DNA of 64,000 bases from Octopus sinensis (GCF_006345805.1 NC_043005.1:85994001-86058000), one strand, 5' to 3'. Positions 33,640-63,299 are shown, counted from the first letter of the stretch. The notes: generated by a model not told the origin, from the letters alone. Numbers and translations are program-made.

Positions 33640-34205
33640 CGAATATAAACAAGAAGGGTAGAAATATTAGTTACTACCAGGTGCCCAGCACAAAAGACGA
33701 ATCAGTCATAAGACAAAAATATTATTCGTATAGAAAAATATTATTCATGTAGTAATACAATTAAAGGCCCCTAAATTAGGATGCCGAGTGCTGAGGACAC
33801 AAAAAGAAGATGAACTTATCGAGAGTGAAAATCAAAAACATTTACCGATAACTTTACACCTCGGACCGATCAGTTTCTGCCTCTTTCTAGCAAAACACAA
33901 AATATGTTTGCTAAGGCTGGCTTTATCAACGAGTCGCCTAAATTGAATCGAGGTCTGCAGCGATGTGAGAAATGCGTCGATCTCGACTACTAGCAGATCT
34001 TAACTTTTCAAATCTCTGCGCAGACGCAAAATCTACACGGCAGTATAGGGCATGCCGGGAAGAATTTTACGAATAAATTCATCATGTAAATATGCGAATA
34101 TAAACAAGAAGGGTAGAAATATTAGTTACTACCAGGTGCCCAGCACAAAAGACGAATCAGTCATAAGACAAAAATATTATTCGTATAGAAAAATATTATT
34201 CATGT
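33640..34205. repeat. 455-bp unit with identical 111-bp terminal direct repeat
   Basis: 33640-33750 equals 34095-34205; homologous to 62797-63299. Confidence 0.85.
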
Positions 34206-34619
34206 TTTGAAAAGGCTGGAGTCAACAAGAAGGGGTACGGTTGGACATTTATTTTTTAATCACTACGATTGTTCTCCAGGTGTCCAGTCGTACTCCATCT
34301 TGTTGATTCCAATTGTTTGAAATATCTATTCACACATGACAGATGCCCAAGCGCAAAACTGAAAGCACGGGGCGAAATCTGAAGGTCGACGAGCTTTATT
34401 CGGTACTCTACTACGTTCTTGACAGAACATACCATAACTACACACACACACACACACACGCACACACATATGTGTGTATGTATATGTATATAATATTGTA
34501 AAAACAATTATTTATACATGAACGAGGTGACCTTTGACAGGACATCTTACATGCTAGAAAGGACAGTCACATCCCAAACCACGAATAAAAGTAATTTTGG
34601 AAAGAATGAAAGTAAAAAA

Positions 34620-34845
34620 GACAATTTCTGTGACCACATCACTCCTAACATCTGGCCCCCTATCTCTCCAACTACAACCCCTTTATTATTAAGTGTGGGC
34701 TACCGTTGAGTGAGAGACCAACAAAACTCCTTGTAACACCAAAGATGAACTGAAGGCAAGGATTACGGCAGCATTTACCAATTTAAACAAGGAGACCGTC
34801 CAGAAGTCCTGTGGAGGCCGTGGTTCAAGTCAATGGTGATTTGAA
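34620..34845 (+). mobile_element. Tc1/mariner-superfamily transposase C-terminal relic
   Basis: NFCDHITPNIWPP...VWATVERETNKTPCNTKDELKARITAAFTNLNKETVQK with frameshifts (WPPxSPDLNP-type motif). Confidence 0.7.
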
Positions 34846-34880
34846 GGAGTGAATTTCCTCTTTAATATTTGAAGATATTT

Positions 34881-35113
34881 ATTATTTTTTTTACTGCCCA
34901 CAAGGGGCTAAACATAGAGGGGACAATCAAGGACAGACAAAGGGATTAAGTCGATTACATCGGCCCAGTGCGTAACTGGTACTTAATTTATTGACTACGA
35001 AAGGATGAAAGGCAAAGCCGACCTCGGCGGAATGTGAACTCAGAACGTAACGGCAGACGAAATACTGCTAAGCATTTCGCCCGGCCAGCTAACGTTTCTG
35101 CCAGCTCGCCGCC
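34881..35113 (-). mobile_element. SINE family A with perfect 19-bp TSD
   Basis: ttaatatttgaagatattt at 34862-34880 and 35114-35132. Confidence 0.92.
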
Positions 35114-35308
35114 TTAATATTTGAAGATATTTCTCTGTAACTTTGGGAAATATATCTGTAAAAATGAGATGTCAATGTTATGTTAATTTTTGAGTGATTT
35201 AGACGACAGTTTATACAATGCACTCTGCATATATATATATATATATATATATATATATATATATAGGTGAGAACGTTGGTATGTGAAAGCACGTTGGATG
35301 TATAATAA

Positions 35309-36013
35309 ATAGAAAAGAGTGAAAAAACTACAAAAGGCTTGTTTTATGAGGTTAAAAAATATATTTAAGACGTTATCTTAGAAAAATGTTATAAAATTTT
35401 GTATATAGTAACAGTTTTTGGAGAAATTAACTGTTTCGTCTTTTACTTTTCAAATTTCTCAAATGTCTTTACCTACATCGTGTCATGTCTCGGTTATGAA
35501 GTGCAAAGAAGAGTTCCAAGCAGGAGGAGGTAATAAGCGATGTCTTCCGCTATAAGGGAGATAATCGCTTATTTTTAATGTACCACAATTTTTAATCTTT
35601 CCATTCTATCAATGTGCTATTGGAACACCAATACAAATTAGATTAAACAAGGAAACATTCTTCATTGAAAAATATAAGCCTGAACTTAACACTCCAAACA
35701 TTCTTATACAGAGAAACTCATCTCATTAAAAAAAGGGGGAAAGAAATATAAAGCGATTATCTCCCTTATACCGGAGGAAATCGCTTATTACCTCCCCCTG
35801 CCTGGAACTCCTCTTTGCGCTTCGAAACGAAGATATGACACGATGTAGATAAAGACATTTGAGAAATTTGAAAAGTTAAAACGAAACCGGTAATTTCTCC
35901 GAAAATTATGTTACTATATGCAAAATTTTATAACATTTTTCCAACATAACGACTTAAATATATTCTTTAACCTTATAAAATAAGCCTTTTGTAGTTTTTT
36001 AACTCTTTTCTAT
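35309..36013 (+). mobile_element. Penelope-like element: GIY-YIG C-terminal stub between ~260-bp inverted repeats
   Basis: Arms 35309-35570 and 35751-36013 are reverse complements; 35583-35729 reads PQFLIFPFYQ...RLNKETFFIEKYKPELN...*. Confidence 0.75.
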
Positions 36014-60204: not shown

Positions 60205-61372
60205 ATTTTACTTGTTTCAGTCATTTTACTGCGGTGATGCTGGAGCACCGCGTTTAGTCGAGCAAATCGATCTCATGACATATACTTTATAAGCCTAGTA
60301 CTTATTCTATCGTTCTCTTCTGCCGAACTTACAGGGACGTAAACACACCAGCATCGGTTGTCAAGCGACGTTGGTGTGGGGACAAACACTGACACACAAA
60401 CATATACATACATACATACATACATACATACATATATATAAATATATATATATATATATATATATATATATATATATGTATGTATGTATGTATGTATGTA
60501 TGTATGTATGTATATGTTTGTGTGTCCCCACACCAACGTCGTTTGACAACCGATGCTGGTGTGTTTTTTATTTTTTAATTTTTTTATTTCTTTATAACTT
60601 TATACCTTTATATTCATTTATATTTTTTAATATTTTCTATATCTCTTTATATCTTTATACTCTACATTTTTATATTTTTCTATACTTACACTTTTTATAT
60701 ATTTTTTATCCTTCGTCCTGAATTCTCGCCCCTCCATCTTTATCTCTATTTGCTCTTATTACCAGGTTCCTTCACGTCTGTCTGTATTTATATATGTATA
60801 TATTTATTTATAAATTTATTTATATTACCTCAACATCCAAACTTCCTCATTCTACATTGAGAGAAGGACGAGATGGACGCTTCATTTTTATGCTGTTGCC
60901 GCATTATGTCGTACGCGAATGAGAGGATTTCCATCCCCAACGTAGAATTTTTGATGTAATACATGTCCTTGAGGTAGTAGTTGTGCGCGGCTGAAGAAGG
61001 CCACAGACACACATTATGCATTGTTATAAATCCGTCTAATAAAGGCCCGAAACATATGTACCGCTGAATCCTTGGCATCATGTTTTTATTTTGATTAATT
61101 TACTCCACCACCTACACCACCAAACGGTATATACAGGTGCTTACAATTATCAAGTACTCACCCTGAATTTCTATACATGTATATATATATATACATATAT
61201 ACGACGGGCTTCTTTCAGTTTCCGTCTACCAAATCCACTTACAAGGCTTTGGCTGTCCCAAGACTGTAGTAGAGAACACTTGCCAAATTGCCACGCAGTG
61301 GGACTGAACACGGAACCATGTGGTTGATAAGCAAGCTACGTATGACACGACCACTCCTGCGTCTATATGTGC
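60205..61372 (-). mobile_element. SINE family B apparently split in its internal (TA)n: tail 60205-60470, head 61199-61372
   Basis: Both halves are on the minus strand in correct order, separated by a foldback and a hammerhead-bearing repeat. Confidence 0.6.
60567..61102 (+). repeat. ~535-bp repeat, left arm of an inverted pair; contains hammerhead fold 60987-61064
   Basis: Reverse complement of 63461-64000; GCGG-CUGAAGA...GAAA-CAUAUG-U-A-CCGC. Confidence 0.88.
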
Positions 61373-62132
61373 ATAATTAGAATTTAAACATTTTGGGAAA
61401 TTCGAAATAAAATATTTTTGACTGCGGAACTCGAAGTAGATAAAATTATAAATGACACCATTTAGAGTACAAGACATTCCAAAGATTCTCCATCAGGAAT
61501 TCTCTAGTTGAATAAATGCACTCAGTTGAGTGTGCGCCTAGACAGTTTAACCAACATACCAAGTCAACCATGTATTTAGAAACACCGGGAGGTCCGTTTC
61601 TTTAGAAAGTTTTGTCGCTTGGATAACAAGTAGTTTGATCTCCTTTGAGAAGTTAAATAAAACTCCAAGAAAGAAACGTATGTGTGTGTGTGCCTGTGTG
61701 TCTGTTTGTATATTTATATGCACAAGCACACATACACACACGCGTTCACACTTCATACACCACCCACACAACACACATACTCTGCACCATGCCACATATA
61801 CGCACGAACACACACGCACGCACACACATTTATATACTCATACTGGTTTTCAGTGCAATAGTACTATTGTATTTTCAGTTTTAACTGCCATATTTGGTAT
61901 AGTAATACTGAGAAATACATAGATACATATATATATACATACATACATACAAATATATATATATATATATATATATATATACATACACACATACACACAC
62001 ACATACACACATATATATATATATATATATATTACACACACGCACACATATATTTCTACGTATGTATGTGTATATATATATATATATATATATATATATA
62101 TATATATATATATATATATATATATATATATA

Positions 62133-62365
62133 TAAGGCGAACTGGCAGAAACGTTAGCACGCCGGGCGAAATGCGTAGCCGTATTTCGTCTGCCGCTAAG
62201 TTTTGAGTTCAAATTCCGCCGGGGTCGACTTTGCCTTTCATCCTTTCGGGGTCGATAAATTAAGTATTAGTTGCGCACTGGGATCGATATAATCGACTTC
62301 ATCCGTTTGTCTGTCTTTGTTTGTCCTCTCTGTGTTTAGCCCCTTGTGGGTAGTAAATAAAAAAA
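62133..62365 (+). mobile_element. SINE family A inserted in (TA)n
   Basis: Full head-core-tail. Confidence 0.9.
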
Positions 62366-62439
62366 TATATATATATACATACCTATATATATGTATATAT
62401 ATATATATGTTGTGTGTGTGTGTATGTACGTATGCCTGT

Positions 62440-62640
62440 GTAACCATGTGTTTGTCGTTGGCGATTTTCTTCCTCCGTCTCCCCTTCCTTTGAAATTTCC
62501 TCTGTATCTGACGAAGAGCTTAGCTCGAAACGTTGATTCCTTTTTCTTTCCTTTCCTGAGCGTCTGATAATACAGTACTTGTACTACGTACTCGCGTTAT
62601 TGCTTTTTTTTCTTGTTTCTTCTTCTTTGTTTGGATTCAC
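62440..62640 (+). mobile_element. Penelope-type terminal repeat remnant with hammerhead core (62508-62534)
   Basis: CUGACGA-A-GAGC-UUA-GCUC-GAAA-CG-U-U; stem I is decayed. Confidence 0.6.
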
Positions 62641-62796
62641 TATATATATATATATATATATATATATATATATATATATATATATATATATATATATATA
62701 TATATATATATAGGTATGTATGTATATATATATATATATATATATATATATATACATACTTACATATATATATACATAATACATTCATATATATAT

Positions 62797-63299
62797 ATAT
62801 AATAAAAGGCTTCCAAATAAGGAAGCGTAGTGCTAGAAAAACAAAAAAGGGATAAATTCATGAAAGGAATGAAAATTAAAAACATTTACCATCTTAGCTA
62901 TATCCCAGACCGAACGGTTTCTACCTATTTGTTAGCAAACACACAGAATATGTTTGCCAGGCCAGTTTCTTCAGTGGGAAGCCTTCGTAATCCTAGACGC
63001 ACAGACTGTTAGAAGCACATGTAGATCTAACGGTTTATATATCCTAACTTTTCAAACCTCTGCGCAGACGCAAATCATACCCGGCGACAAAGAGGATGCC
63101 GGTAAAAAATTTACGAACAAATTTATCAAGCAATATTTAAACATAATCAAATAGGGTAATAAAATAAATTATTATTACCAGTGGCCTAGCACAAAAGACG
63201 AATTAGTCATTAGACTATATATTTTTCGTATAGAAATATAATAAAAGGCTTCCAAATAAGGAAGAGTAGTGCTAGAAACACAAAAAGGGATAAATTCAT
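62797..63299. repeat. 439-bp unit with ~64-bp terminal direct repeat, between (TA)n tracts
   Basis: 62797-62861 is approximately 63236-63299; homologous to 33640-34205. Confidence 0.82.

Follow-up and report, generated by a model that had tools for sequence, protein, structure and literature searches.

A 64,000-nucleotide stretch of the Octopus sinensis genome (GCF_006345805.1 NC_043005.1:85994001-86058000), referred to below at its full length as the window, contains two copies, A and B, of a non-coding unit of ~440-455 bp. Each copy is slightly longer than one unit and carries a direct repeat at its ends, and the two are permuted relative to each other. They are best read as insertions from two old subfamilies of the unit. 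The account favoured here is that A and B are ribozyme-free, non-autonomous retroposon insertions, in the form of partial tandems, moved by machinery of the Penelope-like element (PLE) type; it is put forward tentatively, at somewhat less than an even chance. All inference on the unit draws on these two copies, both located in the 64-kb window.

Architecture of copies A and B

The full unit is composed of three blocks in the order Y-Z-X, and its X-to-Y head-to-tail junction is designated P. The features of the two loci are the following:

33576..33639, unstranded: (TA)n tract adjoining the left end of copy A
33640..33750, + strand: upstream partial copy X1 of copy A, the unit's last 111 bp, pseudo-long terminal repeat (pLTR)-like
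33751..34205, + strand: full unit of copy A, Y-Z-X, 455 bp, with X2 at 34095-34205; the right end, ...ATTATTCATGT, lies at P
33890..33911, + strand: conserved hairpin GCAAAACA...TGTTTGC of copy A, -5.8 kcal/mol, z -2.6
33927..33990, + strand: variable core of the unit (~65 nt), with A/B identity of just 20-40%, the flanking blocks reaching 60-93%
62639..62796, unstranded: degenerate (TA)n tract to the left of copy B
62783-62796: ATTCAT(AT)n, left copy of a putative target-site duplication (TSD), the last bases of the tract to the left of copy B
62797..63235, + strand: full unit of copy B, Y-Z-X, 439 bp; the left end lies at P
62935-62957: copy B homologue of the conserved hairpin
63236..63299, + strand: downstream partial copy Y2 of copy B, the unit's first 64 bp, ending in ...ATAAATTCAT
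63294..63373, unstranded: right ATTCAT(AT)n and (TA)n tract to the right of copy B

The original prediction had described a ~450-bp unit present twice, terminally redundant and permuted, with the block order X-Y-Z-X in copy A and Y-Z-X-Y in copy B, and this description holds. Copy A measures 566 bp (33640-34205) and has a period of 455; copy B (62797-63299) has a period of 438-439. The terminal repeat of A is the predicted identical X, since 33640-33750 equals 34095-34205 at 111/111 positions, and the predicted Y repeat of ~64 bp is found in B (62797-62861 vs 63236-63299), where 2 substitutions and 1 single-base indel separate its two occurrences. Copy A holds a 111-bp 3' piece followed by a full unit, and copy B a full unit followed by a 64-bp 5' piece. 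The partial tandem with a pLTR, by which insertions of the PLE type are recognized, is thus present in A (111 + 455 bp) and in B (439 + 64 bp). The copies amount to 1.15-1.24 units, and no array in the window exceeds 1.24 units. The only close-range direct repeats in the window with at least 88% identity are loci A and B, which makes the redundancy a trait of this repeat family and not of the region.

Junction point, flanking tracts and target site

The right end of copy A (...ATTATTCATGT) and the left end of copy B, which starts with ATAATAAAAGG, meet at one unit position, P. The largest indel between the copies, an A-specific 18-19 nt (TATTCATGTAGTAATACA), straddles P exactly. Because an end of A, an end of B and the largest indel all fall at P, the end points are not arbitrary, and the unit looks linear with defined termini at P: a 5' end at about ...AATTAAAGG / AATAAAAGG and a 3' end at ...TTCGTATAGAA(+/-18 nt). 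The different start points that had been predicted are therefore real in that the copies are in different phase, and they are not free, one end of each copy being at P.

Both copies had also been said to abut (TA)n. This is so at 3/4 junctions and fails at the right end of copy A, which adjoins a 117-nt hairpin. The (TA)-like tracts make up 5% of the window and, with n=2 copies, the association is indicative only. On the + strand of the 64-kb window, ATTCAT followed by at least four AT repeats occurs at two sites only, 62783 and 63294, which exactly frame copy B. This pair is TSD-like and is taken as a putative target-site duplication of ~19 bp. The right ATTCAT doubles as the end of Y2 and constitutes a microhomology at the 3' junction of copy B, where the target ATACATTCAT and the unit ATAAATTCAT match at 9/10 positions. 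With the + strand as the RNA sense, this match reads as what would be expected at a priming junction of target-primed reverse transcription (TPRT). The left end of copy B and its flank have 5-9 nt of TA-like microhomology in common, and at the left junction of copy A the sequence that precedes in the unit (TAAATATG) matches the (TA)n tract at 6/8 bases. The TSD-like flank at one copy, B, favours a route through RNA and TPRT.

The right ends of A and B are 64-80 nt apart on the unit, more than the 30-40 bp published for the PLE tail, and each follows an ATWAWTTCAT-like motif, in what are two copies only. Homology to the unit running on into the flanks of A or B did not rise above shuffled sequences. 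An X-like stretch to the right of copy A (AACAAGAAGGGGTA...CCAGGTGTCCAG) was rejected as similarity at chance level, as was a CRESS-like nonanucleotide (TAGTAATAC) at the A junction, which has 1 mismatch, is not in B and is expected by chance about once in ten units.

Divergence, shared blocks and RNA folding

Copies A and B match across ~450 bp at 71% identity (blastn E=1.7e-49), and 301/432 positions are identical in a global alignment. The exact runs common to both are CTCTGCGCAGACGCAAA (17), AGCACAAAAGACGAAT (16), AAAAACATTTACC (13), TTCGTATAGAA (11) and ATGCCGG, and a GCAAA(A)CA...TGTTTGC hairpin folds in A and in B; every shared block listed in the original prediction is found in both copies. 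Outside the variable core the best blocks reach 87-93% identity, and the variance of the windowed A/B identity is above that of all permutations (0/2000 as high). Within a copy the repeat is identical at 100% (A) or ~95% (B), and between A and B identity is ~70%. This combination indicates that the redundancy arose separately at each locus, either at its formation or by later local homogenisation. The sources of A and B had diverged long before each locus gained its redundancy.

Folded as circles, the copies give minimum free energies with z-scores, against shuffled controls, of -3.2 (A, + strand), -3.65 (B, +), -1.9 (A, -) and -3.5 (B, -). The A/B consensus fold has an energy of -38, compared with -16.4+/-4.8 for column shuffles (0/150 as low). 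The patchy identity and the fold energies suggest a source under constraint, without proving any particular structure. Covariation was rejected as support for the fold. Two compensatory helices are neat by eye (GGUAG/CUACC vs GGUAA/UUACC and GUGCUG/CAGCAC vs GUGCUA/UAGCAC), yet the A/B fold has 9 compensatory pairs where column shuffles give 7.2+/-2.3, which is not above chance.

Searches for ribozymes, reading frames and further copies

Across the whole window, nothing scores as high as the gathering threshold of any Rfam family. At E<=10, on both strands of loci A and B, which together span every junction context of the circle, only microsatellite-driven micro-RNA (miRNA) noise is obtained, and hammerhead, twister, HDV-like, hatchet, pistol, hairpin and hovlinc ribozymes have no match. 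A regular-expression search for the CUGANGA...GAAA hammerhead core found none common to A and B. The absence of a hammerhead from the unit, as predicted, is thereby confirmed at the gathering score and at E<=10 on both strands, and the unit is without the hammerhead that marks canonical PLE pLTRs and metazoan non-LTR retrozymes. A self-processing motif of another or unknown type, which had been left as a possibility, gains nothing from these searches, which returned no known ribozyme and nothing positive for an unknown one.

The statement that no convincing open reading frame (ORF) is present is likewise borne out. The longest ORFs in the A and B loci have 52-66 aa, and a conserved ORF was rejected because a homologous GTG-started pair goes out of frame at a 2-nt A/B indel. 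By inspection, an LTR element or terminal-repeat retrotransposon in miniature (TRIM) was dismissed: copy A repeats X and copy B repeats Y, so that there is no fixed LTR, and there is neither a tRNA-complementary primer binding site (PBS) after X1 (AGTAATACAATT) nor a polypurine tract (PPT) before X2. A Helitron or Helentron was also dismissed by inspection, since neither strand of A or B has 5'-TC...CTRR-3' termini with a 3' hairpin.

The window holds no third copy or fragment of the unit, as searched with blastn and with nhmmer --max using a profile of both monomers. Long homogeneous tandem arrays of the monomer are absent from the window and from 97 kb of O. sinensis and O. bimaculoides sequence. 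A metagenome scan with a 21-nt conserved block gave 2 matches, both judged chance, and gapped two-block patterns of the unit drew no match among viral or prokaryotic contigs. Exact look-ups of ORFs from the window matched no database record. Copies of long interspersed nuclear elements (LINEs) within the window show no similarity to the unit.

Genomic neighbourhood

The window is octopod DNA, as the SINE and RT matches described below indicate; it is eukaryotic, with 36% G+C, and rich in microsatellites. It has 59 (TA)-like tracts, which account for the 5% mentioned above, and long (TAA)n, (TGA)n, (CTAT)n and (CA)n runs. This extreme microsatellite density gives rise to numerous long but spurious ORFs and to miRNA hits below threshold (mir-297, mir-466, mir-1277).

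A unique 117-nt near-perfect hairpin (34206-34322, +) begins with the base directly after copy A. As + RNA it folds with -52.8 kcal/mol (z -8.9) and as - RNA with -38.1 kcal/mol (z -5.8), the strands differing in that 7 mismatches of the stem pair as G.U wobbles in the + RNA. In Rfam it has just a weak, sub-threshold similarity to mir-2012 (29 bits vs 90). It could be a gene of the miRNA or hairpin RNA type or an inverted duplication, and its cruciform-prone DNA may have helped to site copy A there. An inverted repeat at 35305-36017, 1.1 kb downstream of copy A, has arms of ~290 nt (35305-35596 / 35725-36017) that are 80-92% complementary, with a 128-nt spacer. It lies inside a (TA)n tract (35226-35268, 36003-36153) and looks like a foldback or insertion of the miniature inverted-repeat transposable element type, or an inverted-copy insertion; judging by its position, insertions in this genome seem to land in (TA)n tracts quite generally. 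Around copy B, inverted arms of 540 bp (60572-61102 / 63461-63999, the right one running off the window end) are 93.7% identical and enclose 2.4 kb with copy B, a short interspersed nuclear element (SINE) and several (TA)n tracts.

The SINE, of ~240 bp, is abundant, with at least 15 copies in the window (e.g. 34886-35117, 62136-62372 and 31111-31350), and the copy at 34886-35117 has a 19-bp TSD, TTAATATTTGAAGATATTT. The SINEs of the window are 87-91% identical to SINEs at an O. sinensis locus, and a SINE-derived ORF has a database match only in Octopus bimaculoides. Some copies stand in tandem, at 21470-21892 and 29267-29818, and the SINE is also found at 16741-17620 of L004. The tandems consist of 2-3 units whose junction is always the one between consensus positions 206 and 27, so that a dimer/trimer subfamily seems likelier than permutation; as a parallel to A and B they were rejected, since the internal junction is fixed and there is no permutation. 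Fragments of LINE-type reverse transcriptase (RT; Pfam RVT_1) are found at 11024-11854, 14238-14888, 52297-54471 and 57408-59106, and the best database match of the RT ORF 57408-58229 is an 'uncharacterized protein' of O. sinensis (73% protein identity).

Origin of the copies

Partial tandems are frequent among insertions of the Naiad and Chlamys PLEs, a truncated copy standing before a full copy and forming a pLTR (Craig et al. 2021, PMC8557442). A tail of 30-40 bp is possible at one end, canonical hammerheads are absent and TSDs are often indiscernible owing to a strong microsatellite bias, (TA)n being the microsatellite in Naiads. Non-autonomous Chlamys elements form pLTRs and head-to-tail copies, and several Naiad lineages occur in Octopus spp., where they are described as old remnants (PMC8557442). 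In a Poseidon PLE, transcription of the tandem locus yields RNA with several copies, AT-rich DNA is nicked by the endonuclease and reverse transcription begins at internal RNA sites, which explains the tail (Frangieh et al. 2024, PMC11167929). The repeat annotation of O. vulgaris (2026) has 31 PLE families with 336 recent insertions, and Dong-R4, CR1 and RTE LINEs are active besides the PLEs (PMC13282606). What defines metazoan retrozymes in the strict sense is a type I hammerhead within tandem units of 150-450 bp (Cervera and de la Pena 2020, PMC7229834), and a 2026 preprint argues that animal retrozymes are PLE passengers (10.64898/2026.07.22.740005).

Partial tandems, (TA)n targeting and the lack of a hammerhead are the published behaviour of PLEs of the Naiad type, and on this comparison a PLE-type enzyme most probably moves the unit as a ribozyme-free passenger. 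Copies A and B resemble non-autonomous PLEs (MRC1 and non-autonomous Chlamys) and Naiad insertions in being partial tandems with the head-to-tail junction inside the insertion, and Naiad-type PLEs in the (TA)n or AT-rich target, the obscured or variable TSDs and the absence of a canonical hammerhead. The source RNA would hold more than one unit head to tail, for example as the transcript of a partial-tandem or tandem locus, and nicked DNA of the (TA)n type would serve the reverse transcriptase as primer (TPRT). Synthesis would then begin internally on the RNA and cross the head-to-tail junction, so that each insertion would comprise one full unit and a piece of the neighbouring unit. As every copy keeps a full unit and the junction, the element could propagate from any copy. 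The architecture, the meeting of end points at P, the TSD-like sequence framing B, the link with (TA)n, the lack of known ribozymes and the block-wise conservation are observed; the RNA intermediate, the multimeric template and the identity of the enzyme are inferred. The original prediction had the copies arise from a circular RNA by reverse transcription, or from a tandem array by excision. A junction-containing template, and probably reverse transcription, are retained here; the circle would not be required, as a multi-copy linear RNA with an internal start gives insertions longer than one unit. That prediction had also set itself against membership in a longer Penelope element; the unit is not part of a longer PLE, and it has the look of a short element carried along by PLE-type machinery.

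Several observations weigh against this account. The unit has only ~450 bp, unlike PLEs, and no inverted partial copy of it is present. The extra piece of copy B, at 64 bp, exceeds the published 30-40-bp PLE tail. In either orientation, one of the two copies requires a non-canonical initiation site. A GIY-YIG motif or a PLE was not seen in the window, L001, L004 and L005 (L001 being from a different organism), and the RT fragments of the window are LINE-type. The fourth junction, at the right end of copy A, adjoins the unique 117-nt hairpin and not (TA)n, and no TSD is seen at copy A. The probability that the end points coincide at P by chance is, taken alone, roughly 0.05-0.1, and the indel at P contributes a similar factor. 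The compensatory pairs stay at chance level, and no copy of the unit was found by blastn or nhmmer in 97 kb of O. sinensis (20.6 kb) and O. bimaculoides (76 kb). Moreover, cephalopod Naiads are described as long inactive (Craig et al.), yet the repeat of copy A is 100% identical, which would require another PLE clade or a LINE as the driver.

Dispersal of a satellite-like repeat at the DNA level has a distinctly lower probability, though one to be taken seriously. Monomer circles of extrachromosomal DNA or fragments cut out of a tandem array, amplified by rolling circle, would be rejoined where fragile (TA)n tracts break, or the two loci would be what erosion left of short arrays. Such a process would leave permuted arrays that exceed one unit and end abruptly, the TA-like microhomology at both left junctions agrees with it, and high identity within and low identity between the loci also fits local homogenisation. 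Mollusc satellites of ~160-400 bp occur as dispersed single monomers and short arrays with abrupt junctions (PMC5139131), and A and B share with phBglII400, BIV160/Cg170 and DTHS3 the scattered monomers of a few hundred bp, the abrupt junctions and the occasional slight run-over into the next monomer. Unlike those satellites, the unit has a TSD-like flank at one copy, its end points fall together at a single position and long arrays of it are not known, the window having none above 1.24 units. The ATTCAT(AT)n flank of copy B is not predicted by end-joining of a DNA fragment, the end points and the largest indel fall at one point instead of at random, and block-wise conservation across 30% divergence suggests a constrained source. 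It is unlikely that a LINE, such as a microsatellite-targeting Dong/R4 or CR1-type element, drove the TPRT, with template jumping, in place of a PLE. The putative TSD of copy B, ~19 bp, has the size of that of the neighbouring SINE, LINE RT fragments are plentiful in the window and Dong-R4 and CR1 have been recently active in O. vulgaris (PMC13282606). Homology-assisted priming, as in the 9/10 match at the 3' junction of B, is typical of LINEs, whereas the PLE examined in vitro initiates where there is no homology to the target. Passengers of LINEs, on the other hand, normally share a fixed 3' end and tail, and they are shortened at the 5' side instead of exceeding one unit. That pattern of fixed ends is seen in the plentiful SINE of the same genome, with its fixed internal junction and no permutation, and the unit is dissimilar to the LINE copies of the window.

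A true retrozyme-like element is improbable. In such an element a ribozyme of unknown class would cleave the RNA at P, and a circular RNA of ~450 nt would be reverse transcribed by rolling circle. The architecture fits, with P as the cleavage/ligation site, the RNA is more structured than shuffled sequences and has conserved hairpins, and size and low GC are as in metazoan retrozymes (PMC7229834). With the metazoan non-LTR retrozymes the unit shares its non-coding nature, the 150-450-bp size class, low GC, the head-to-tail arrangement and a presumed junction-carrying RNA intermediate; unlike them, it lacks a type I hammerhead and occurs as 1.15-1.24 units, not as dimers to multimers. No known ribozyme class is found at E<=10 on either strand, every junction context included, an 18-19-nt A/B indel at the head-to-tail junction is odd for a precise site within a catalytic core, covariation is not above chance, and a circle is unnecessary, since PLEs use multi-copy linear RNA. 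That a circular RNA replicon is cleaved at P by an undescribed self-cleaving class, and would then be the first hammerhead-free animal retrozyme, is a shade less probable again. Plant LTR retrozymes and TRIMs resemble the copies as small non-coding elements between direct repeats, and differ from them in the hammerhead, the TG...CA LTR ends, the PBS and the PPT, all of which are lacking here, as well as in that the 'LTR' of each copy comes from another part of the unit. An artefact or coincidence, whether local assembly duplications or two unrelated local duplications of resident sequence, is scarcely credible. The perfect 111-bp repeat of A is what a mis-assembly could give, yet two loci 29 kb apart and 30% diverged show the same property in different phase, the repeat of B has gathered differences and the homology of A and B is at E=1.7e-49.

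Implications

If the copies are indeed PLE-type passengers, the unit would be a small, hammerhead-free passenger of Penelope-like (or similar) RT machinery in a cephalopod. Such a system would be of a kind already known, and two copies allow no more than a modest claim about a fairly ordinary mobile element. For annotation, the case advises caution, as circularly permuted, terminally redundant repeats beside (TA)n need not imply a circular RNA. The unit would contribute one more data point to the recent view of animal retrozymes as passengers of PLEs, and it would indicate that a ribozyme is dispensable for spreading in the form of partial tandems.

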